The position numbers and the translations under genes are program-made. Below are positions 1 to 31,292 of a stretch of DNA of 64,000 bases, piece by piece. The DNA is taken from IMG/VR virus record IMGVR_UViG_3300027793_000052, positions 1 through 64,000 of that record; one strand, written 5' to 3'. Below the pieces are notes generated by a model. That model searched no databases. It saw nothing but the letters and a program-made list of their open reading frames with translations, and had not been told where the DNA came from. Each line of letters starts with the position of its first letter. Positions within the stretch are counted from its first letter, which is position 1.

Positions 1-884
1 CTTATAGAAACCCATCCGAAGATGCCACAACCAAGATACAAGAAATAAATGAAGCCTATGAAATTTTAATAGGTAAAAAACAACCACCAAGAGAAGAAAT
101 ACCTAATAAAGGTGGTTTTGGTGGTAACCCATTTAATAATCCTTTTAATAACCCTTTTGCTGGGTTTAGAATGAAATCTAGACCCATTAGTATACTGGTT
201 AATGTAACATTAGAAGATATTTTTCACGGTGTTAACAAAAATATAAAATTTAATGTTAATAAAACTTGTAAAACATGTCAGGGTAATGGTGGTAACACCA
301 CAACATGTACACATTGTAATGGAAGAGGTGGTAAAATAGAATACCACCAAGCTATGGGTATGCAAACAATGATAATGTGTAGTCATTGTGGTGGTTCTGG
401 ACAAATGAGGGTTGATACTTGTGGTACATGTCACGGTGCTGGCATTATAAACCATATAGAAAGTTTTGATTTAAAAATACCCAAAGGACTAACCGAAGGT
501 GGTAGATTAATTATACAAGGTTTGGGGGCTGAAGGTCCTAACTTGGAAAGGGGCGACGTAGTTGTCAATTTTAATATACAACCCCACCCAAAATTCCAAT
601 TGGAAGGTTTAAATTTACATAAAACAGAAGAATTACCTTTTGTTGATATGATATTAGGTAAAGAAATTGAAATAGAAAGTTTTAGTGGTAAGTTTAAAGT
701 TAATATACCTGAATATTGTGAAAGTAACAAAGTCATAAGATTAAAAGGCCAGGGTTTAATTGACGAGGATACAGGTATTACAGGAGACTTATATGTTAAA
801 TTAACACCAAAAGTACCAAAAAATATAACAGATAGAGAAAAAGAATTGTTACAAGAACTTAGGAGCTCAATCAATTTTTCGTGA
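1..884 (+). CDS. dnaJ: DnaJ-type co-chaperone, 5'-truncated by the window edge
   Basis: Frame open from nt 3: YRNPSEDATTKIQEINEAYEIL (end of J-domain), G/F-rich linker, four CxxCxGxG zinc-finger repeats, C-terminal substrate-binding domain. Confidence 0.92.
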   Translation, partial: YRNPSEDATTKIQEINEAYEILIGKKQPPREEIPNKGGFGGNPFNNPFNNPFAGFRMKSRPISILVNVTLEDIFHGVNKNIKFNVNKTCKTCQGNGGNTTTCTHCNGRGGKIEYHQAMGMQTMIMCSHCGGSGQMRVDTCGTCHGAGIINHIESFDLKIPKGLTEGGRLIIQGLGAEGPNLERGDVVVNFNIQPHPKFQLEGLNLHKTEELPFVDMILGKEIEIESFSGKFKVNIPEYCESNKVIRLKGQGLIDEDTGITGDLYVKLTPKVPKNITDREKELLQELRSSINFS

Positions 885-896
885 TATTTATAAAAT

Positions 897-2036
897 ATGA
901 AAAAGAAAGAGTTACTTAAAGAAATCATGGGTGTACCCAAAGCTTTAAATTTTTGGGTTGATTATTTTAGTATTATATTAGCTGGTATGGCCAAATCAAT
1001 TTCACAATCAGATGAGATGGAAGAAGCTGAAGTAACCTATAAAAATCCAAATAACCCTGAAGAAATTGTTGAGGATTTAGCAAATCGTGGTTATAAAACC
1101 ATGGATGGTAAAACAGTGATGGATTGGGTACAAAAAATAGGTGGTTATTCAGACTTAGGGCAATTAATAAAAAATCCAACATATAAAGAATTTCCATTAT
1201 ACAAACCAACAATTGGTTTGATGGTAACATTTGTACCTGATGAATTATATGAAAGTGAAATTAGTGGTGATTATACAAAATCGATTCATGCCTATCATAT
1301 TTGGGATCCAAATACAATAAAACTGTCTAAAATGGGTGGTGACAATTTTGTTTTTCTTGGACAAAGTTTTAATTTTGAAGTTATGGTACCATTTTCATGG
1401 ATTGAGAATTTTGATACGGATCAGTTTAGAAAAATGTTAAAACCTGTTATTGGTCATGAGTTGACACATGCTTATGAAACATATAAAAGATTTCTTGGAA
1501 CAGGTGATCCTCTAAAAGGTCGTGAAACTTTTTTAAATGTCGCTTCTGAAACGGCTAAAAAATCCGATAACCCTTATTGGGGAAAATTTTTGTATTTGAT
1601 ATATCTATCATTATCCTATGAAATAAATGCCAGAATAGTAGAATTATATTCTTTTATTAAAAACAATGACATTAAAAACCAAGAGGAATTTATGAATGTT
1701 TTACAAAAAAGTTCTATATGGGATAAGATTAAAAAATTACAATCTTTTAATGCTGAAAACTATATTAATAATTTTAGTGACGATGAAATTAAATCTTTAA
1801 TAGATAATTGGGACCGAACATTACAGGATTTAAACATAGAAATGACAAATAAATTAGGTCACATATATAAGGGAAAATTAATGGACAAGGTACCACAATC
1901 GGCCAAAGAAAACCCAATTAAATTTTTTAAATTTTTTGAAAAAATATTCCATAAAAAAGGTGAAGATTTTAGAAGAAAGGCATTAAGATTATCTTCTTTA
2001 TTAATAAATGGTGAACAAGAAAAAATAGTGAAATGA
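897..2036 (+). CDS. HExxH (zincin-like) putative metallopeptidase, late-type gene
   Basis: GHELTHAYE motif with downstream EINAR; ATATTTAT motif at 884-891. Confidence 0.6.
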   Translation: MKKKELLKEIMGVPKALNFWVDYFSIILAGMAKSISQSDEMEEAEVTYKNPNNPEEIVEDLANRGYKTMDGKTVMDWVQKIGGYSDLGQLIKNPTYKEFPLYKPTIGLMVTFVPDELYESEISGDYTKSIHAYHIWDPNTIKLSKMGGDNFVFLGQSFNFEVMVPFSWIENFDTDQFRKMLKPVIGHELTHAYETYKRFLGTGDPLKGRETFLNVASETAKKSDNPYWGKFLYLIYLSLSYEINARIVELYSFIKNNDIKNQEEFMNVLQKSSIWDKIKKLQSFNAENYINNFSDDEIKSLIDNWDRTLQDLNIEMTNKLGHIYKGKLMDKVPQSAKENPIKFFKFFEKIFHKKGEDFRRKALRLSSLLINGEQEKIVK

Positions 2037-2139
2037 TGGAAAATTATAAAATTAATAGTGATTTAATTTCACAAGAAGAGATGGCAAAAAGGTGGGAAGA
2101 AAAAATAATTGGGTTACTACCTAAATTAAAAAAAATAAT

Positions 2140-2181
2140 TTGACATTTAAATAAACTTTTGTATATTTGTATCATATTTAT
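2140..2181 (+). promoter_or_regulatory. Composite promoter of tRNA operon 1 (TTGACA / TAnnTTTG / ATATTTAT)
   Basis: TTGACA 2140, TATATTTG 2162, ATATTTAT 2174; near-identical blocks precede tRNA operons 2 and 3. Confidence 0.7.
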
Positions 2182-2212
2182 TAAACACAAAAAATTATAT
2201 AGTAAACTCACC

Positions 2213-2302
2213 ATGACAAAGGCGACAACATACATTGTTTTAACTCACAGAGAGGAGAGAGAACGTTATCTGACTAACAGTCGGAGTGGATGTCGTATAT
2301 AG
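2213..2302 (+). CDS. Leader peptide 1 (MTKATTYIVLTHREERERYLTNSRSGCRI), putative attenuator uORF
   Basis: ATG..TAG between promoter and terminator; AGA GAG GAG AGA GAA CGT run matches downstream tRNA-Glu and tRNA-Arg. Confidence 0.7.
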   Translation: MTKATTYIVLTHREERERYLTNSRSGCRI

Positions 2303-2326
2303 TCATGTCTCTATATATCAAGATAT

Positions 2327-2358
2327 AAACCCCGATTAAGAGTCGGGGTTTTTTATTT
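2327..2358 (+). terminator. Attenuator-type intrinsic terminator, tRNA operon 1
   Basis: AAACCCCGAT/GTCGGGGTTT hairpin plus T run. Confidence 0.8.
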
Positions 2359-2409
2359 TGGCCAATAAATAAAAAATTTATACTTTTGTAAAAGTTCTTT
2401 GATAAACAA

Positions 2410-2481
2410 GCTCCCGTCGTCTAAAGGCAAGGACACATCTCTTTCACAGATGAAATACGGTTTCAAGATCCGTCGGGAGTA
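2410..2481 (+). tRNA. tRNA-Glu(UUC)
   Basis: GCTCCCG/CGGGAGT acceptor; CATCT-CTTTCAC-AGATG anticodon arm. Confidence 0.85.
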
Positions 2482-2486
2482 CAAAT

Positions 2487-2560
2487 GGTTCCGTAACTCA
2501 ATAGGATAGAGTAACTACCTTCTAAGTAGTAAGTTACAGGTTCGATCCCTGTCGGAATCA
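2487..2560 (+). tRNA. tRNA-Arg(UCU)
   Basis: GGTTCCG/CGGAATC acceptor; ACTAC-CTTCTAA-GTAGT; GGTTCGA T-loop. Confidence 0.9.
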
Positions 2561-2650
2561 CAAAAAAAGTGATAAAAAATTTATAAAGCGTATTGACAGA
2601 AGAGGTTTTTATCACTAGTATTAACAAACAAAAACGATATAGTTCTTTAA

Positions 2651-2972
2651 AATACTGATACTTGAATATTTGAAGCGGTTGGAATGATTACATCAAACAA
2701 CTATGATTCAGAAAAAGGACATTTTACCTAAGTATTGTCCAAGGTTTAATTAAAAGATGGGTATTAAGTTATCGTCCTGTTAAACTTAAAAAAACAATGG
2801 GAGTTTGTTAGCAACTCTAAAATCTAACAAGTTAGGAAGGGACTTTAAAACCCCCGAGTTTATTAGTGTCTGTAAAACCTAGTCAGGGTCACTCCTGGTC
2901 TTCCCCGAGATGGGGAACACGAAAAGTAACCATTATTCTGAAACATTCTCAGATATCAAGTTATCTAGTATT
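2651..2972 (+). ncRNA. Candidate Ro60-associated (Y-like) RNA, long form
   Basis: Ends pair (AATACT-GATA-CTTGA with TCAAG-T-TATC-T-AGTATT); carries GAAGCGGT-N8-TTACATC motif; lies upstream of Ro60. Confidence 0.5.
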
Positions 2973-2974
2973 TA

Positions 2975-3063
2975 AAAATATTCTATTGAAGCGGTGAAGA
3001 AAGTTACATCATTATTATTGAAAACGAAAAACACTTTCATCTAAAATACTCAATAGGTACTTT
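2975..3063 (+). ncRNA. Candidate Ro60-associated (Y-like) RNA, short form
   Basis: TATTCTATTGA/TCAATAGGTA closing stem, GAAAG/CTTTC inner stem, same GAAGCGGT-N8-TTACATC motif. Confidence 0.5.
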
Positions 3064-3105
3064 ATTTGTCCACGTTAACTGTAAGAGTTAATTGTGAGAC
3101 CTTAC

Positions 3106-3139
3106 AGTCCCTACGAGTAAAATTGTGGGGACTTTTTTT
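3106..3139 (+). terminator. Terminator hairpin immediately upstream of the Ro60 start
   Basis: AGTCCCTAC/GTGGGGACT plus T run; overlaps alternative hairpin CTGTAAG/CTTACAG. Confidence 0.6.
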
Positions 3140-3169
3140 ATTTTATTAAACAATATTAAATTTTAAGTT

Positions 3170-4780
3170 ATGACAAAGTTCAAATCAAAAGCAGTGGAAA
3201 ATTTTGACGGTGGTATTTCTTATACCTTAAACCCATTGGATACATTACGTATCGTGGCAGCATCATCTATCTTTGGTGAACCATCTTATTACAGAGGTTC
3301 TCACGACAAACCATCTAACTTATCTACGTTAAAGACGTATGACGTGTTAGGTTTGTACAAAGACCCAAGTGATACAACTACTGATGTTTTCACTAAGGCT
3401 ATCGACGAGGCTTTAGACTATGACTTCAAGGCAACCCTTGAGTTAGCTAAGACTCTTCGTCACGAACACTTCATGAGGTTAAACCCAGCGGTTATCTTCA
3501 TTAGAGCGTCTCAACACCCAAAGAGGGTTGAATTTAACGAAGCAAACCCAGGTTTGATGAAACAATACGGTTTGGACATTGTTGGTCGTCCTGATGACAT
3601 CACCAACCAATTTGATTACTACATGTTCTTAAACGGTTCTAAGAATGGTTTACCATCTATCGTTAAGAGGACATGGGCTGAGAAGTTGGCGTCTTTCACC
3701 AAGTACCAAATCAAGAAATATAAGTCAAAGTCATTAATTGACTTGGTTCGTATTTCTCACGCACACTCTGAAGTTATCGATGAGTTAATGAAGACTGGTG
3801 ACGTGGCTGTTTCTGAAACTGAAACAACTTGGGAATCACTTAGGTCTCAAGGTAAGACTTGGAAGGAAATTCTTAACACAATTAAGGTTTCACACATGGC
3901 TTTACTTAGGAACTTAAGGGGTATTTTCACTGAGGTGAATGATACTGAAGTGGCTAAGAAGGTTTTAACTGACCTTAAGGCAGGTGTTAAGTTTGGTAAG
4001 CAATTCCCATTCCGTTACTACACAGCTTACAAGGAAATCGATAAGGTTTCTATAAACCACAAGGGTATGATACTTGACGCTTTACAAGAGTGTCTTGACA
4101 TCTCTATCGAAAACTTCCCTAAGTTAAAGGGTAAGGTGGCTTGTTTATCAGATAACTCTGGTTCAGCTTGGGGTACAATGACCTCTGAGTATGGTACAAC
4201 CCATATTGCTGAAATTGCTAACTTATCATCTATCATCACAGCTTTATGTTCTGATGAAGGATATGTCGGTGTCTTTGGTGAAAGATTGAGTTTAAAACCT
4301 GTTTCTAAAAGAGACGGTATTATTACTCAGTTGGAAGAAACTTGTAAGAGAGGTAAGTCTCAAGGACAATCTTGTGAACACGGTATTTGGTTATTCTTAC
4401 GTGAAGCAATCGACACTAAAACTCACTATGATACTATCTTTATTTATAGTGACATGCAGGCAGGACACGGTGGTCTTTACGGTACAAGTGTAAGCCGTGG
4501 TGACGTTCACTCTAGAGGTGGAAGTTATGTAGACGTACTTAAAATGGTACAAGAATACCGTAAGAAGGTTAACCCAAAGGTTAACGTATTCACAGTCCAA
4601 GTGGCTGGATACAACAACTCTGTTGTACCTGAAAACCTTTACAGGGGTTCAGTACTTGGGGGTTGGACTGGTAAGGAAGCCTTATACGCTAGTGAGGTAA
4701 TCAAGACTTGGGATGAAATTGAGTCTAACGACAAGGTTACATCTGAGGTTGAAGTTACTGAACAAGTAGTACAATCTTAA
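3170..4780 (+). CDS. Ro60/TROVE-domain RNA-binding protein (Rsr-like) with vWA domain
   Basis: MALLRNLR, KQFPFRYYTAY, vWA DNSGS and YSDMQ motifs; 536 aa; codon usage (AAC, TTC, CGT) suggests high expression. Confidence 0.9.
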   Translation: MTKFKSKAVENFDGGISYTLNPLDTLRIVAASSIFGEPSYYRGSHDKPSNLSTLKTYDVLGLYKDPSDTTTDVFTKAIDEALDYDFKATLELAKTLRHEHFMRLNPAVIFIRASQHPKRVEFNEANPGLMKQYGLDIVGRPDDITNQFDYYMFLNGSKNGLPSIVKRTWAEKLASFTKYQIKKYKSKSLIDLVRISHAHSEVIDELMKTGDVAVSETETTWESLRSQGKTWKEILNTIKVSHMALLRNLRGIFTEVNDTEVAKKVLTDLKAGVKFGKQFPFRYYTAYKEIDKVSINHKGMILDALQECLDISIENFPKLKGKVACLSDNSGSAWGTMTSEYGTTHIAEIANLSSIITALCSDEGYVGVFGERLSLKPVSKRDGIITQLEETCKRGKSQGQSCEHGIWLFLREAIDTKTHYDTIFIYSDMQAGHGGLYGTSVSRGDVHSRGGSYVDVLKMVQEYRKKVNPKVNVFTVQVAGYNNSVVPENLYRGSVLGGWTGKEALYASEVIKTWDEIESNDKVTSEVEVTEQVVQS

Positions 4781-5309: not shown

Positions 5310-5993
5310 ATGGAAAAAGTAACATTAGAAATTCGAGCCGCTGAGGGTGGTGAAGATTCGAAACTCCTTGTGGAGGACATGGCTGCAGTCTATCTGAAAG
5401 CAGCCAAGAATAAAGGTTTTACCGTAGAGTCCGAACATTGAAGAGACGGACTTGTTAGTATTTAGCTGACAGGTAAAGGGGTTAAGAAATACTTCCAAAA
5501 CGAAGTTGGTTGTCATAGATGGCAAAGAATTCCACCCACTGAAAAACGTGGTAGAGTACATACAAGTACAATTACAGTAGCTTTATTAGATTCCCAAAAT
5601 TATCAGGAGATAGACATCAATATGGATGAATTACGTATTGAAACAACTCGTGGTACAGGTAATGGTGGTCAACATAAGAACACAACAGATTCTTGTGTGG
5701 TTATAACCCATATACCAACAGGGATAAAAGTGGTTAGAGATGGTAGAAGTCAACATAAGAATAAGGACGAGGCTTTAAACGAAATAAAACAACGTCTAAA
5801 TGATTTATACCAACAAAACCATATGGATAAAGTTTCTAAAGAAAGAAAGGGTCAAATCGGTAGTGGTAATAGGGGTTCTGAAAAGAAACGTACCTACAAC
5901 CAAAAAATGGATTTGGTTATCGATCATGAAAGTGATAAGTCTACAAGTCTTAAACAATTCATGAAAGGTAAATTAGAACTATTAATGTGTTAA
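5310..5993 (+). CDS. Class I peptide release factor homolog (RF1/PrfH-like, no N-terminal domain) with in-frame UGA and UAG
   Basis: EIRAAEGGED, HRWQRIPPTEKRGRVHTS (PxT) and GGQ all in one frame; stops at 5439 (TGA) and 5463 (TAG). Confidence 0.8.
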
Positions 5994-12595: not shown

Positions 12596-12688
12596 ATGAA
12601 GACTTTAACAAACATATTATTCGTGATGACACTAACGGTGTTATTTCAGTTTACACAAACTGAACTCGGGTTCTTATGTCTAAGTTAA
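12596..12688 (+). CDS. Leader peptide 2 (MKTLTNILFVMTLTVLFQFTQTELGFLCLS)
   Basis: 22 of 29 non-start codons are Q/F/M/T/V/L, the amino acids of the downstream tRNAs. Confidence 0.8.
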   Translation: MKTLTNILFVMTLTVLFQFTQTELGFLCLS

Positions 12689-13061: not shown

Positions 13062-13895
13062 ATGAAATGGTATAAAAAAGATATTGAAACATTGATTGAA
13101 TTAATTCGTCAAGGTAACACCTATGATGAAATAGGTGTTATAATGAAAAGAAGTAGATCTTCTATTAAAGCTAAATTATTAAAATTGGGTGAGACATATA
13201 GAAAGTATTCTGAAAACAATTATTATGAAAAGGTTAATTGTAAAAATTGTGGTATAGAATTTAAATCTTTAATGTCTAATAAACAAAAATTTTGTAACCA
13301 TACATGTGCTGCAAGTTATAATAATGTAATTAGAGGTAAAAGAAGTCAAGAAACAAAAAATAAAATAAGTAAATCATTAAAAAGTAAAAAAAAGGAGAAA
13401 TATGATTTAAATCCTAAAAAATGTATGAAATGTGGTGAACATATACCATATAGTAAATGGTGTAATTATAGAAAAAATTGTGACGAATGTAACATTATTA
13501 TTCGTAAAAATATGGGTAGGATTTTAGGTCAAAAAACCTCACAAACCAAAATAAAAAGATCGAAAGACGAGATAAATTTATATGAGTTATGTAAGATGAG
13601 TTTTAACGATGTTGAACATAATAAAATAATAAGTTCTGGATGGGATGCTGATATTGTTATAAATGATTATAAAATACTTATACTATGGAATGGTCCTTGG
13701 CATTATAAACAGTTACCATTAAAAAACCATAGTTTAAATCAAGTACAAACTAGAGATAAAATAAAACAAAAATTGTTTGAAAGTTTAGGTTGGAGAGTTA
13801 TAATATTTGAAGATAGATATTACACACCATATACAGCTTTTGATTATTTAAAAAATATAATTCGGGATATATCTCCCCACTCTCATAAGGTGTAG
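13062..13895 (+). mobile_element. Putative free-standing homing endonuclease (Cys-rich DNA-binding repeats plus Vsr/PD-(D/E)xK-like C-terminus)
   Basis: CKNC...FCNHTC, WDADIV..ILILWNGPWHY, RDKIK..GWRV; inserted inside a tRNA cluster. Confidence 0.6.
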
Positions 13896-14218: not shown

Positions 14219-14266
14219 AAAATTTTGATAATAAATAAACTTTTACTATATTTGTATCAACAAAAT

Positions 14267-14340: not shown

Positions 14341-14556
14341 CAAAACATTGACGATATGGCGTGTAGGTGTAACTCGTTATAACACCGAGGGGAACATATG
14401 GTATACGAGAAACCATTGTGGTGTGTCTGAAGGGTCAATGTTGATATGGGGTGAGAATCTTAGTTGGCCACTAAGAAAATATGGAAGGGTGTCGCGTTAC
14501 CCAATCGGCTCAAATCCGATCCACTCCACTTTGGGTTATTTTTTGACCAAAAAATA

Positions 14557-14830
14557 ATGAGTAAGAGATACTCAAGAGTTGGGCTACTGGTCTATATCGC
14601 GTGGCAGTCTAGATGAGTGATGAGACTTTAAACTTCACCCCTTGGGTTAAAGGAGAAACATCGAACTCCTCCATTGTACGGTTGACAGGTTTTTATGTGG
14701 TAAGACACTAATGTAAACTCATAGAATTACCGATTAGAGACAAAGGGCTCTTCTGCAGGTGTTATGAGATGGTTCTCGAAACAGTCAGAGAAACCCGTTA
14801 AAATCTAATCCTCAAAGTAATCTCATTTGG
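14557..14830 (+). ncRNA. Unidentified structured RNA
   Basis: Non-coding and GC-enriched; nested stems AATGAG/CTCATT, GATTAGA/TCTAATC, GGG-CTCT/AGAG-CCC. Confidence 0.4.
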
Positions 14831-14839
14831 GGTAAAAAT

Positions 14840-14941
14840 AGTCAGGTGGCGTAATTGGTAACCGCTATAGGGTTGAGGCGTGCTAACTACCTATATAAAT
14901 TGTTTTTAAACAATGCAGGTTCGAGTCCTGTCCTGACTACA
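14840..14941 (+). ncRNA. tRNA-like RNA, AGTCAGG family copy 1 (aberrant anticodon arm)
   Basis: AGTCAGG/CCTGACT acceptor, CAGGTTCGAGTCCTG T-arm, no 7-nt anticodon loop. Confidence 0.65.
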
Positions 14942-15057: not shown

Positions 15058-15160
15058 AGTCAGGTGGTGAAATTGGTAGCCACAGCATATAAGACCATGG
15101 GCGTTGTGTTGAAACCTACTGGGGATTAGATTTACAGGTTCGAGTCCTGTCCTGACTACA
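15058..15160 (+). ncRNA. tRNA-like RNA, AGTCAGG family copy 2
   Basis: Same acceptor and T-arm, unrelated central region. Confidence 0.65.
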
Positions 15161-15384
15161 CGAGTCGAGTTGTGTTCGACTAATGTGCTCCCGCATGATG
15201 GAAGTGGTGTCACACCCACAGGGACCTGAGCCGATTACTTGAATCTAAGTCGGTTGGTTGGTGTACCAGTAACAGGAGGAAGTTAACACACAAGTCCTAA
15301 CCCCTCACGTAAGTGGGTTGCCGCTGAAGCCTCGAGAAGCTATTCGGTATTGGGGACAGTCAGAAATGATTGGGCGAAAATTAT

Positions 15385-15461
15385 AGTCAGGTGGTAGAAT
15401 TGTGATTACACCTTGGGACGAATGTCTAGGAGATACAGGTTCGAATCCTGTCCTGACTACA
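15385..15461 (+). ncRNA. tRNA-like RNA, AGTCAGG family copy 3
   Basis: Same acceptor and T-arm; central hairpin with 4-nt loop. Confidence 0.6.
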
Positions 15462-16213: not shown

Positions 16214-16285
16214 CGCGATGAGGGTGTTGGTTCCCCACCGGTCTCATAAACCAGGTCCACGGCCGTTCGATTCGGCCCGTCGCCA
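16214..16285 (+). tRNA. tRNA-Met(CAU), possibly initiator type
   Basis: CTCATAA loop; C1:C72 mismatch in acceptor stem; anticodon stem lacks the usual three G-C pairs. Confidence 0.75.
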
Positions 16286-16382
16286 CTAAGTCCCCTATAG
16301 TATTATAGGGGATTTTTTTTAACATTAAAGACAACTTGACAAATTTAACAATCATAACGATATTTATATAAAAAGATATACC

Positions 16383-17273: not shown

Positions 17274-17320
17274 TTGACAAGTAATAAACTTTTACTATCT
17301 TTGTATCATATTTATTAACA
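17274..17320 (+). promoter_or_regulatory. Composite promoter of tRNA operon 3
   Basis: 47 nt identical to 12532-12578. Confidence 0.75.
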
Positions 17321-17338
17321 AACAAAACAATTAAAGAA

Positions 17339-17434
17339 ATGAAAAATTGGCATAACATATCGAGTATACATAGTAATCGAATTAATAGTTCGGTGTACAC
17401 ATGGTGTGTTTTGTCCAATCAAGATAATACTTAA
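17339..17434 (+). CDS. Leader peptide 3 (MKNWHNISSIHSNRINSSVYTWCVLSNQDNT)
   Basis: Codons 3-18 are 16 consecutive N/W/H/I/S/R, the amino acids of the downstream tRNAs. Confidence 0.82.
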   Translation: MKNWHNISSIHSNRINSSVYTWCVLSNQDNT

Positions 17435-17459
17435 TGGGAATTAAGTTTTTTGTACAAGG

Positions 17460-17496
17460 AAAACCCACCACATGAAAATGTCGGTGGGTTTTTTGT
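17460..17496 (+). terminator. Attenuator terminator, tRNA operon 3
   Basis: AAAACCCACC/GGTGGGTTTT plus T run; competing strand at 17401-17412. Confidence 0.8.
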
Positions 17497-17522
17497 TATT
17501 TGACATATTGGTAAATTAAAAT

Positions 17523-17611
17523 GGAGAGTTAAGCAGATGCATTGGAGCGTCGACCAGCTTTGAAACCTGGGTCTCGTTAAGTCGGGTGGGGGTCGGGTCC
17601 TCAGCTCTCCG
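17523..17611 (+). tRNA. tRNA-Ser(UGA)
   Basis: TTTGAAA loop, long variable arm, GGAGAGT/GCTCTCC. Confidence 0.75.
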
Positions 17612-17617
17612 CAAAAT

Positions 17618-18205: not shown

Positions 18206-18293
18206 GGAGAGTTAAGGAAGGGAGTGGTTCCCTCGCTTGTTTGGAAAACAAGAACCCATTAAGTTGGGCACAGTTCGACTCTGTATCTCTCCG
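18206..18293 (+). tRNA. tRNA-Ser(GGA)
   Basis: CTTGT-TTGGAAA-ACAAG; long variable arm. Confidence 0.85.
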
Positions 18294-18303
18294 CTAATAA
18301 CAT

Positions 18304-18375
18304 GGGCGTGTCATATAAGGGTTATTATGCGAAGCTTATACCTTCGTCAAGGTGGCTCAACTCCACCCACGCCTA
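18304..18375 (+). tRNA. tRNA-Ile(UAU)
   Basis: CGAAG-CTTATAC-CTTCG; GGGCGTG/CACGCCT. Confidence 0.78.
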
Positions 18376-18380
18376 CAAAT

Positions 18381-20541: not shown

Positions 20542-20760
20542 TAATCCTTATATTTGTATAAGAAATAAAAATACATAACATAAATTTAACATAAGCGTTG
20601 ACAAATAAATAAAACTTTATTAATTTTGTCCATATTTATTTATAGAAGTTGTGGTTCTGATGGGTTTCAGGAACCACCCCAAAAAAGACAGATACAGAAC
20701 GGGGACTGTTTACAACGAAAACCCCACAAAAAAAACTATAAACAAATTAAAACTAAAAAA

Positions 20761-20868
20761 ATGAGAAAGAATTACACATATCAACCGAGTACACCGAAAG
20801 CAGGGAAAGTAGCCGATAAAGGCTGTGATACCTTGAATGGTTGTGGTATGTACAATTCTGTCTCATAA
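20761..20868 (+). CDS. Leader peptide 4 (MRKNYTYQPSTPKAGKVADKGCDTLNGCGMYNSVS)
   Basis: 11 of 12 codons in PKAGKVADKGCD are from the Y/P/D/G/A/C/K set of downstream tRNAs. Confidence 0.78.
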   Translation: MRKNYTYQPSTPKAGKVADKGCDTLNGCGMYNSVS

Positions 20869-20892
20869 GAATATATAGAGAAGAGTTTAAAT

Positions 20893-20930
20893 AACCCCCA
20901 CAACCGATAAAAAAGTTGTGGGGGTTTTTG
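20893..20930 (+). terminator. Attenuator terminator, tRNA operon 4
   Basis: AACCCCCACAAC/GTTGTGGGGGTT plus T run; competing GGTTGTGG at 20839-20846. Confidence 0.85.
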
Positions 20931-20943
20931 TTTATAGTTATAC

Positions 20944-21045: not shown

Positions 21046-21169
21046 AAAAAGAATAGAAGCGGTGGTATTGGTTACATCGATAATGGATATCAATTTGACA
21101 GCAAATCAAACGTTGTGGGTTCGAGTCCCATGATAAAAAACACCGATATTTTTATTCTCTGTTCTTTTT
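21046..21169 (+). ncRNA. tRNA-Cys-like body closed by a Y-like stem
   Basis: GAAGCGGT-N8-TTACATC motif, D-like hairpin, TTTGA-CAGCAAA-TCAAA, GTGGG-TTCGAGT-CCCAT; no normal acceptor stem. Confidence 0.55.
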
Positions 21170-21260: not shown

Positions 21261-21338
21261 GGATACGGCGCATAACGGCTGGTGTACCTGACTGTCTATC
21301 AGGTTTTAAGAGGGTTCGACTCCCTTCGTATCCGCCAA
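21261..21338 (+). tRNA. tRNA-Asp(GUC), CCA encoded
   Basis: CCTGA-CTGTCTA-TCAGG. Confidence 0.88.
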
Positions 21339-30868: not shown

Positions 30869-31259
30869 GGGGGTGACTTGGAATTGATTGGCTACATTAG
30901 TTATTGTAAAAGCATGTCGAGACTTGTTTGTAGGCTCGTTAAACCAACAATCAAAATTTTAAATGGCGACATTTTCGCAGACGCTACTGTAGGTCACTTT
31001 GTGACTGAAGGTGCAGAGGTTGTAGCCTAATTAGATTAGGGTACACAACGGGGTTGGATTACCTAGGAACAGAAGTCCAAAAAAGGGTGTTACCACTACC
31101 ACAAAAGGGTAAAGTCAAACATGGAATGTGTCAACTAAGTCCATGGGAGAACTAAAAGATGAAGTTGTATATTTTGGGTGGTTAGAAAACCACATCCTAA
31201 ACATGTAGAAGACTTTAATTCATTAGAACAAGACGGCGGTTCGACCCCGCTCACCTCCA
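30869..31259 (+). ncRNA. ssrA: tmRNA
   Basis: GGGGGTG/CACCTCC-A acceptor with G3-U70, GCATGTCGAG after helix 2, GACGGCGGTTCGACCCCGC T-arm; tag ORF 30965-31030. Confidence 0.92.
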
Positions 31260-31292
31260 CTTTAGAAATTTATTAACCTAAAAATCGAAAAA

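Follow-up and report, generated by a model that had tools for sequence, protein, structure and literature searches.

A predicted leader-peptide attenuator ahead of tRNA-Glu and tRNA-Arg genes in a giant phage

Why should a phage place a short open reading frame and a transcription stop signal in front of two of its own tRNA genes, and does the reading frame have anything to do with the tRNAs that follow it? This question is raised by a locus near the start of a 64,000-nucleotide stretch (positions 1 to 64,000 of IMG/VR record IMGVR_UViG_3300027793_000052, hereafter the window), which belongs to a 318-kb phage genome. The features of the locus and of three sister units are summarized in Table 1. 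The initial annotation had described it as a Glu/Arg-sensing attenuator in which AGTCGG (2279-2284) competes with the terminator right arm for CCGATT (2332-2337). This observation is confirmed, since the terminator right arm starts with the same AGTCGG at 2341, and its interpretation as a ribosome-mediated attenuator is supported by the analyses below, although only in silico.

Table 1. Coordinates of unit 1, its sister units and a nearby gene in the window.
Position	Strand	Feature	Description
2140-2182	+	Promoter box P1	TTGACA, 16 nt, TATATTTG, then a conserved start of the transcript; likely transcription start about 2175
2213-2302	+	Leader ORF	29 codons plus TAG stop (2300-2302); first ATG after the start of the transcript
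2249-2263	+	Regulatory run	Codons 13-17, AGA GAG GAG AGA GAA
2196-2317	+	Closed leader fold (predicted)	-30 kcal/mol; encloses the start codon, with the 1:2 hairpin (CTGACT 2270-2275 with AGTCGG 2279-2284) at its tip
2279-2337	+	Antiterminator hairpin (predicted)	59 nt, -18.7 kcal/mol; base 2279-2284 plus 2286-2287 paired with 2329-2330 plus 2332-2337, upper helices at 2290-2325
2327-2359	+	Intrinsic terminator	11-bp stem (2327-2337 with 2341-2351), 3-nt loop, T-rich tail; -14.3 kcal/mol
2357-2388	+	Possible second promoter P2	TTTG, 20 nt, TACTTTTG; ends 21 nt before tRNA-Glu
2410-2482	+	tRNA-Glu(UUC)	Rfam tRNA, 48.8 bits
2487-2561	+	tRNA-Arg(UCU)	Rfam tRNA, 65.9 bits
12532-12752	+	Sister unit 2	P1 box, leader ORF 12596-12688, terminator; then tRNAs Gln, Phe, Thr, Val, Leu, Leu and others
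17274-17497	+	Sister unit 3	P1 box, leader ORF 17339-17434, terminator; then tRNAs His, Asn x3, Ile, Trp, Ser, Ser, Ile, Arg(ACG)
20598-20934	+	Sister unit 4	P1 box, leader ORF 20761-20868, terminator; then tRNAs Tyr, Pro, Asp, Gly, Ala, Cys, Lys
30869-31262		tmRNA	

The promoter scan scored P1 at 11 of 12, and the 43-nt box occurs exactly four times in the genome, each time ahead of a leader ORF, a terminator and tRNAs. All tRNAs of the genome lie behind these four boxes; tRNA-Glu and tRNA-Arg were detected by ARAGORN and Rfam, and the extra tRNAs of unit 3 were confirmed by ARAGORN at a relaxed threshold. P1 contains the motif TAnnTTTG, which probably corresponds to the Bacteroidota -7 element, and TTG-N19-21-TAnnTTTG is 3.5-fold enriched upstream of the genes of this phage. 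No Shine-Dalgarno sequence precedes the leader ORF. Nevertheless, this does not argue against translation, as only 2 of 222 genes in this genome have one.

The five consecutive codons of the regulatory run are read by the two tRNAs that follow. The initial annotation had extended the run to codon 18 (codons 13-18 spanning 2249-2266), but this codon (CGT) is not read by tRNA-Arg(UCU). Under the codon usage of the genome, a run of 5 codons cognate to these two tRNAs in a 28-codon ORF has P = 1.3e-4, whereas the overall count of 5/28 is not significant (P = 0.10), and the run is short. The many Thr codons noted previously, which have no tRNA in this cluster, are five in number and are not conserved in any ortholog, indicating that they are probably not regulatory. 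It could be argued that a purine-rich repeat reads as Arg and Glu codons by chance next to an ordinary terminator, since AGAGAGGAGAGAGAA is low-complexity sequence. This is very unlikely given the run probability, the preservation of the same run in frame in diverged orthologs, and the same rule in three sister units and 23 leader families (see below).

How the leader might control the terminator was investigated by minimum-energy folding with a ribosome mask. The stretch 2175-2409 folds far better than shuffles (z = -5.1). Without a ribosome, the leader folds on itself, the left arm of the terminator is free and the terminator forms. When the ribosome A site is at codons 1-19 and arm 4 is not yet made, the antiterminator hairpin is the minimum-energy fold and eight nucleotides of the left arm are pre-paired; from codon 21 the arm is free again and the terminator forms. 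The result holds for 15 footprint settings, and only 18 of 1000 dinucleotide shuffles of 2264-2326 reproduce this three-state logic. The antiterminator had been taken as a 6-bp helix and the weakest of the four. Whereas, the minimum-energy fold adds two pairs after a bulge and two upper helices, and the second claim holds only in part. The arm-to-arm duplex in unit 1 is -8.3 kcal/mol and does not beat shuffles (P = 0.15), unit 3 is about equal at -8.5 kcal/mol, and unit 2 has an 11-bp perfect antiterminator of -19.6 kcal/mol. Support for the weak base helix of unit 1 comes from the upper helices and from its position being the same in the orthologs. Folding with a mask is crude, however; L010 (one of the IMG/VR relatives, which are given L numbers here) loses the antiterminator from codon 10 onwards, and units 3, L024b and L061 give unclear patterns.

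Specificity was first examined inside the genome. When the four leaders were compared with the four tRNA sets, only the matching pairs were significant, with run P values of 1.3e-4 (unit 1), 1.3e-5 (unit 2), 4e-9 (unit 3) and 0.036 (unit 4), and all 12 other pairings were not significant. In unit 2, 21 of 29 leader codons are cognate (P = 1e-6) with a run of 11; in unit 3, 20 of 30 with a run of 16; in unit 4, 19 of 34 (P = 0.011).

Orthologs of unit 1 fall into three diverged leader subfamilies, namely unit 1 of the window; L010, L019 and L012; and L014 and L017. Orthologous ORFs of 22-23 codons lie at the same place in all five of these relatives. An Arg/Glu run is kept in four of the five ortholog types, and its Arg codons are always AGA. 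All keep a 1:2 hairpin right after it and a region 2 that pairs with the terminator arm, while the rest of the peptide changes. In L012/L021 the run has shrunk to two codons and helix 2:3 has lost a pair, thus unit 1 may be decaying in some lineages. The arm duplexes of L010, L014, L017 and L019 beat shuffles (P = 0.000 to 0.022), and L012 against L019 shows a compensatory C-G to T-A change in helix 1:2. A MAFFT alignment of the seven unit-1 sequences did not put the helices of the three subfamilies in the same columns, and the helices are therefore reported per sequence. No close DNA relatives were found among isolated phages, and a search with ORF 897-2036 gave only a near-identical contig and one distant locus without tRNAs.

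The strongest evidence is comparative, and it includes a wider survey. The promoter box finds 125 sites in IMG/VR, 88 of them with a tRNA within 1.5 kb downstream. Across 23 leader families, on average 57% of leader residues belong to the downstream tRNA set against 31.5% for permuted pairings, and the mean longest run is 10.3 against 3.4; none of 20,000 permutations reaches either value, although the counts include related sequences and are not phylogenetically independent. Glu travels with Arg in this clade, with Phe, Asp and Ala in L064 and L103 (L103 also has His), with Phe in L163, and with Asp, Met and Leu in L024, and the leaders change accordingly. The signal is frame-specific, being 0.50 with a run of 9.0 in the ORF frame against 0.30/0.27 with runs of 2.8/2.6 in the other two frames.

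These data bear on the possibility that 2175-2359 is a separate small non-coding RNA gene with its own promoter and terminator, that the tRNAs are transcribed independently from P2, and that the ORF and its codon run have no function. The strong folding of the stretch, its flanking promoter and terminator, and the weak helix 2:3 would be consistent with this. A motif like P2 is also found in the L019/L080-type spacer by pattern search and, by eye, in L012. The motif type occurs at 0.14 per kb per strand genome-wide, and the sigma-70 scan does not call P2; if it is active, part of tRNA-Glu and tRNA-Arg synthesis escapes the attenuator. Nevertheless, this explanation is considered unlikely, as it accounts neither for the match of the codon run to the downstream tRNAs, nor for its restriction to the ORF frame, nor for its following of cluster make-up across the 23 families. 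It also does not explain L017, where the motif is absent and tRNA-Glu follows the terminator directly, or the 30 of 43 distinct units in which the first tRNA starts 5-41 nt after the terminator stem and no promoter-like motif was found in the gap.

Alternatively, the leader may be translated and sense the same codons while stalling changes processing or stability of the precursor, Rho access, or recruitment of the phage's own tmRNA and release factor. The phage encodes the tmRNA and release-factor domains close by, and the codon match alone says nothing about the output step. This is also regarded as improbable, because every unit has a canonical hairpin plus T tract 18-32 nt after the stop codon (24 nt in unit 1), and in most units a competing helix overlaps the 5' arm of the terminator, which is the hallmark of termination control.

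Taken together, in the absence of transcript, ribosome or reporter data, unit 1 is with good though not complete confidence explained as a ribosome-mediated transcription attenuator that gates read-through from P1 into tRNA-Glu(UUC) and tRNA-Arg(UCU). In this model, a ribosome loads on the leader and, if either charged tRNA is scarce, lingers on codons 13-17, which keeps the closed leader fold and the 1:2 hairpin open and leaves 2279-2325 free to pair with the left arm as soon as it is made, and the polymerase reads through. If the codons are decoded quickly, the ribosome reaches codons 21-30 or the stop and covers the 5' half of the antiterminator, the terminator forms and transcription ends. 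With no translation at all the terminator also forms. The result would be negative feedback, in which each tRNA operon is switched on by a shortage of exactly the decoding capacity that it supplies. Translation of the leader and the response to tRNA supply are inferred, and tight coupling of transcription and translation in the probable Bacteroidota host is assumed.

What is sensed is more likely the supply of the tRNAs themselves (decoding capacity for AGA and GAR) than the amino acids Glu and Arg. Characterised leader-peptide attenuators are described as amino-acid sensors, and a ribosome cannot tell a missing tRNA from an uncharged one. However, making more tRNA does not relieve amino-acid starvation, so such a loop would have no benefit, and the run uses only AGA, the codon of tRNA-Arg(UCU). 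In addition, split codon boxes lean towards the isoacceptor present downstream. Units with only Arg(ACG/GCG) have 8 CGN codons to 5 AGR, although AGR makes up about 78% of Arg codons in the genome; units with only Ile(UAU) have 7 ATA to 1 ATY, and units with only Leu(UAG) have 19 CTN to 8 TTR. A classical amino-acid sensor is thus unlikely.

The mechanism itself is known, but its target appears to be new, and no report of attenuators ahead of tRNA genes was found in literature searches that did not cover most subscription journals. In the multivalent attenuators of amino-acid operons in Enterobacteria, such as the thr leader (Thr and Ile codons), the ilvGMEDA leader (Ile, Leu and Val), trpL and hisL, a short translated leader with regulatory codons, helices 1:2, 2:3 and 3:4 and an intrinsic terminator are likewise present, and ribosome position decides between antiterminator and terminator. 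Those leaders control biosynthetic enzymes, whereas the only genes behind the terminator here are two tRNA genes of a phage, and the sister leaders list up to about 12 different amino acids. The resemblance to Rfam Trp_leader (RF00513) concerns the hairpins only, as the match at 2282-2356 scores 27.2 bits (E = 0.004) against a gathering score of 41. The His leader ahead of hisS paralogs in bacilli (PMC2965389), and probably pheM ahead of pheST in E. coli, also read codons of the amino acid that their target handles, but control a charging enzyme for one amino acid, while the present leader is matched to the tRNAs down to isoacceptor codons. T-box riboswitches also choose between terminator and antiterminator by sensing a specific tRNA, but bind uncharged tRNA directly through a specifier codon and the T-box sequence without a ribosome; no T-box match was found here at gathering threshold or at E up to 5 in 2100-3200, and the frame-specific multi-codon ORF points to translation.

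It is likely, though not demonstrated, that a clade of giant phages, probably infecting Bacteroidota, wires every tRNA operon to a leader peptide that spells out the codons read by its own tRNAs, as a demand-driven homeostat for viral tRNA supply. This would be the first case of tRNA genes under ribosome-mediated attenuation, with sensors reading up to a dozen tRNA species at once, and the same circuit would raise synthesis of a tRNA automatically when a host anticodon nuclease or host shut-off depletes it. If this reading holds, phage tRNA synthesis is not constitutive but tuned codon by codon to translational demand, and transcription and translation would have to be tightly coupled during infection of a host with Bacteroidota-like expression signals, for which no evidence is known to us. 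The more than 20 leader families would form a ready-made library of sensors for specific tRNAs, useful for studying tRNA depletion by host defences and as synthetic-biology parts, and many small hypothetical ORFs next to phage tRNA clusters could be re-annotated.

More distant phages served as a negative control. Loci with 38-55% TROVE identity and Bacillus phage G show no matching leaders except at one cluster of L061, the best runs elsewhere being 0-3 residues. Bacillus phage G (Donellivirus) is the closest cultured relative by the TROVE/Ro60-like protein (52% identity), and the region around its gp540 has the same neighbourhood of TROVE gene, scattered tRNA genes and a tmRNA. Its tRNAs, however, sit behind ordinary sigma-A type promoters, and it uses Shine-Dalgarno sites, in contrast to the phage studied here.

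The sequence is the first 64 kb of a 317,983-bp IMG/VR virus record, which has a G+C content of 30% and is rated 96% complete. The features are summarized in the table below. In this genome, 22 tRNA genes were found by ARAGORN and further tRNA-like elements by Rfam, and all of them lie between 2410 and 21688, together with a tmRNA at 30869. Downstream of the unit under study (unit 1), a promoter-like site is followed by about 500 nt of structured RNA (fold z = -3.2) with a long closing stem and its own terminator. Since this region lies directly upstream of the TROVE/Ro60-like gene, it is a candidate Y-RNA-like partner, although no Rfam family reaches threshold. In addition, a 23-nt motif occurs three times against 0 expected, twice in this RNA region and once between tRNA-Tyr and tRNA-Pro of unit 4.

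Features of the examined sequence, with positions, strand where given, and description.
Feature	Position	Strand	Description
DnaJ gene	3-884	+	
Unknown ORF	897-2036	+	
Unit 1	2140-2561	+	
Promoter-like site of unit 1	2140-2167		TTGACA, 16 nt, TATATT; scores 11 of 12
Closed structure of untranslated leader	2196-2317		-30 kcal/mol; buries the start codon
Leader ORF	2213-2302		Codons 13-18 AGA GAG GAG AGA GAA CGT
Small hairpin	2270-2275 with 2279-2284		CTGACT with AGTCGG, at the tip of the closed structure
Long hairpin	2279-2337		-18.7 kcal/mol on its own; includes CCGATT at 2332-2337
Terminator	2327-2351		11-bp stem with a T tract; -14.3 kcal/mol; right arm opens with AGTCGG at 2341
Second promoter-like site (P2)	2357-2360 and 2381-2388		TTTG, 20 nt, TACTTTTG
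Structured RNA region	2593-3135	+	Promoter-like site 2593-2621; closing stem roughly 2650-2975; terminator 3106-3133
23-nt motif	2672-2694, 2988-3010, 21056-21078		GAAGCGGT, 8 variable bases, TTACATC
TROVE/Ro60-like gene	3170-4780	+	
Release-factor gene in two pieces	5310-5441 and 5622-5993	+	PCRF-domain fragment and RF-1 domain ORF, about 180 nt apart
Promoter boxes of units 1 to 4	2140, 12532, 17274, 20598		43 nt
ORF inside unit 2	13065-13890		275 aa; between tRNA-Phe and tRNA-Thr
Partial promoter box	14226-14259		Ends 8 nt before tRNA-Leu(UAA)
tRNA-like elements	14840-14939, about 15060-15160, 15385-15459		Shared acceptor and T arms
G+C-rich stretches	14345-14840, 15160-15385		Apparently structured
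tRNA-Met(CAU)	16214-16286		ARAGORN, relaxed threshold
tRNA-Ser(UGA)-like element	about 17523-17615		Long variable arm; directly after the unit-3 terminator
tRNA-Ser(GGA)	18206-18294		ARAGORN, relaxed threshold
tRNA-Ile(UAU)	18304-18376		ARAGORN, relaxed threshold
Extra stretch of unit 4	20650-20730		About 130 extra nucleotides with a strong hairpin, between promoter box and leader ORF
tRNA-Asp(GUC)	21261-21337		ARAGORN, relaxed threshold

The leader ORF, its Arg/Glu codons and the segment competing with the terminator's right arm, which had been described in the initial annotation, were all confirmed. Under the codon usage of the phage itself, five cognate codons in a row in a 28-codon ORF have P = 1.3e-4, whereas the plain count of 5/28 is not significant. 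Chance is considered a very unlikely explanation.

The unit is one of four. The promoter box occurs exactly four times in the genome, and each copy is followed by a first-ATG ORF of 29-35 codons, a terminator and a tRNA cluster. When the four leaders were compared with the codons read by each of the four clusters, only the diagonal stood out. Unit 1 has 5/28 cognate codons with a longest run of 5 (P of run 1.3e-4), unit 2 has 21/29 with a run of 11 (1.3e-5), unit 3 has 20/30 with a run of 16 (4e-9) and unit 4 has 19/34 with a run of 6 (0.036), while all twelve off-diagonal cells are at or below expectation. In unit 3, nearly every tRNA species of the cluster has its own codon in the leader, for instance ATA for Ile(UAU), ATT for Ile(GAU), AGT for Ser(GCU) and CGA for Arg(ACG). 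TCG also appears and would be read by the Ser(UGA)-like element, which was identified by eye only. This element is not called by ARAGORN here, but a Ser(UGA) is called at the matching place in orthologs (loci L088, L095 and L108). A fifth, partial copy of the promoter box has no leader ORF or terminator and looks like an internal, unattenuated promoter inside unit 2. The extra stretch of unit 4 is lacking in the other three units.

The untranslated leader of unit 1 folds into the closed structure, and the terminator forms beside it. The nascent RNA up to the terminator loop was then folded with about 28 nt masked by a ribosome. With the A site at codons 1-19, which include the Arg/Glu run, the best fold pairs 8 nt of the terminator's left arm with 2279-2287, and these pairs are the base of the long hairpin. 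From codon 21 to the stop, the arm is free again. The pattern survives 15 combinations of footprint edges and arises in only 18 of 1000 dinucleotide shuffles of 2264-2326. The helix proposed in the initial annotation, of only 6 bp, is therefore right but understated. Nevertheless, the arm-to-arm duplex taken alone is weak (-8.3 kcal/mol, P = 0.15 against shuffles). A translated sensor with another output is an unlikely alternative.

Searching IMG/VR with the neighbouring TROVE protein gave 54 loci. In the closest group (77-86% identity), those loci that hold enough upstream DNA have a promoter box, a 22-23-codon ORF, a terminator, tRNA-Glu and tRNA-Arg(UCU) at the same place. The peptides fall into three diverged subfamilies, which share an Arg/Glu run of five to seven codons with Arg always AGA, a small hairpin immediately after the run and a following G-rich segment complementary to the terminator's left arm. 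In loci L012/L021, however, the run has shrunk to two codons, so the unit may be degenerating there. The duplexes in loci L010, L014, L017 and L019 beat shuffles (P = 0.000 to 0.022), and masked folding gives the same three-state pattern in L012, L014, L017 and L019. Between L019 and L012, a C-G pair of the small hairpin has become T-A through changes on both sides. The Thr codons pointed out in the initial annotation are not conserved.

More distant relatives group their tRNAs differently, and their leaders differ to match. In loci L024-L027, a leader rich in Ile, Leu, Pro, Ser and Arg precedes Ser, Arg(UCU), Pro, Ile, Met and Leu, and a second leader, rich in Glu, Met, Asp and Leu, precedes Glu, Asp, Met and Leu. 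In locus L061, a 12-residue run of Lys, Cys, Trp, His, Met, Phe, Gly and Ala precedes exactly those tRNAs. A scan of IMG/VR for the promoter box gave 125 matches, 88 of them with a tRNA within 1.5 kb downstream. The first ATG ORF after each box was taken with no regard to its content, giving 75 units in 23 leader families. On average, 57% of leader residues belong to the downstream tRNA set, against 31.5% (sd 2.7%) when leaders and clusters are paired at random, and the mean longest run is 10.3 against 3.4; none of 20,000 permutations reaches either value. The match exists only in the frame of the ORF, with 0.50 and a run of 9.0 against 0.30/0.27 and runs of 2.8/2.6 in the other frames. The geometry is tight: leaders are 24-37 codons long, the stop codon lies 18-32 nt before the terminator stem, and in 30 of 43 distinct units the first tRNA begins 5-41 nt after the stem. 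As a negative control, tRNA clusters in more distant phages (TROVE identity 38-55%) and in Bacillus phage G were examined; apart from one cluster of L061 they have no such leaders, and the best runs elsewhere are 0-3 residues. Bacillus phage G (NC_023719.1 395465-421030) is the closest cultured relative by the TROVE protein (52% identity) and shares the TROVE, tRNA and tmRNA neighbourhood, but has ordinary promoters and no matching leader ORFs ahead of its tRNAs.

In split codon boxes, the leaders lean towards the family read by the isoacceptor present downstream. Leaders of units with only Arg(ACG/GCG) have 8 CGN and 5 AGR codons, although AGR makes up about 78% of Arg codons in the genome; those of units with only Ile(UAU) have 7 ATA and 1 ATY, and those of units with only Leu(UAG) have 19 CTN and 8 TTR. 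These counts include related sequences and are treated as a trend. Making more tRNA cannot cure amino-acid starvation, which together with the codon trend favours a loop that monitors the supply of the tRNA species, and sensing of amino acids rather than tRNAs appears improbable. The codons of the two tRNAs of unit 1 make up 9% of all codons in the long ORFs of the phage.

Only 2 of 222 long ORFs have a Shine-Dalgarno motif, and the bases before start codons are A/T-rich, so the lack of a Shine-Dalgarno sequence in the leader is normal for this phage. The promoter box contains TAnnTTTG, which seems to correspond to the -7 element of Bacteroidota promoters, and TTG-N19-21-TAnnTTTG is 3.5-fold enriched upstream of genes. 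The box pattern has matches in only 8 contigs of 185,579 prokaryote genomes, and every classifiable one is in Bacteroidota (Emticicia, Cytophagaceae, Saprospiraceae). In at least four of them (Emticicia, Cytophagaceae) it precedes the same protein gene, and one is a phage contig binned into a MAG, which carries a unit-3 ortholog. It is inferred that the host is probably in Bacteroidota. By the same rule, the second promoter-like site, P2, lies between the terminator and tRNA-Glu. A like motif was found in the L019/L080-type spacer by pattern search and, by eye, in L012, but it is absent in L017, where the tRNA follows the terminator at once. Unit 1 may therefore combine a basal, unattenuated supply with an inducible one, and this is the main caveat specific to this unit. 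The alternative of a separate non-coding RNA, with the tRNAs driven by P2, is nevertheless regarded as unlikely.

Taken together, the interpretation in the initial annotation of an attenuator with a Glu/Arg sensor ahead of the two tRNA genes is supported, and it is likely that unit 1 is a functional attenuator of read-through into tRNA-Glu and tRNA-Arg(UCU). The broader claim, that phage tRNA operons are gated by leaders written in their own codons, rests on stronger evidence than unit 1 alone. On this reading, the unit works like the multivalent leader-peptide attenuators of the thr and ilv operons and like the pheM-pheST and hisS leaders (PMC2965389), and it satisfies the structural criteria of leader-peptide attenuators that can be tested in silico. 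It is not a member of any curated family, as Rfam Trp_leader reaches 27.2 bits against a threshold of 41 and there is no T-box match. It departs from the described members in its target, which is tRNA genes; no description of attenuators ahead of tRNA genes, in phages or in cells, was found in the literature searched, a provisional result as most subscription journals were not covered.

Protein ORFs are inserted inside tRNA units. Besides the ORF inside unit 2, an ORF that looked endonuclease-like by eye lies between the unit-1 terminator and tRNA-Glu in loci L014 (about 4060-4460), L015 and L018, and these ORFs look like mobile insertions that ride on the read-through transcript. Of the three tRNA-like elements sharing acceptor and T arms, which are separated by the G+C-rich stretches and have unclear anticodons, the first and third score 41-48 bits as Rfam tRNA, while the middle one was seen by eye only.
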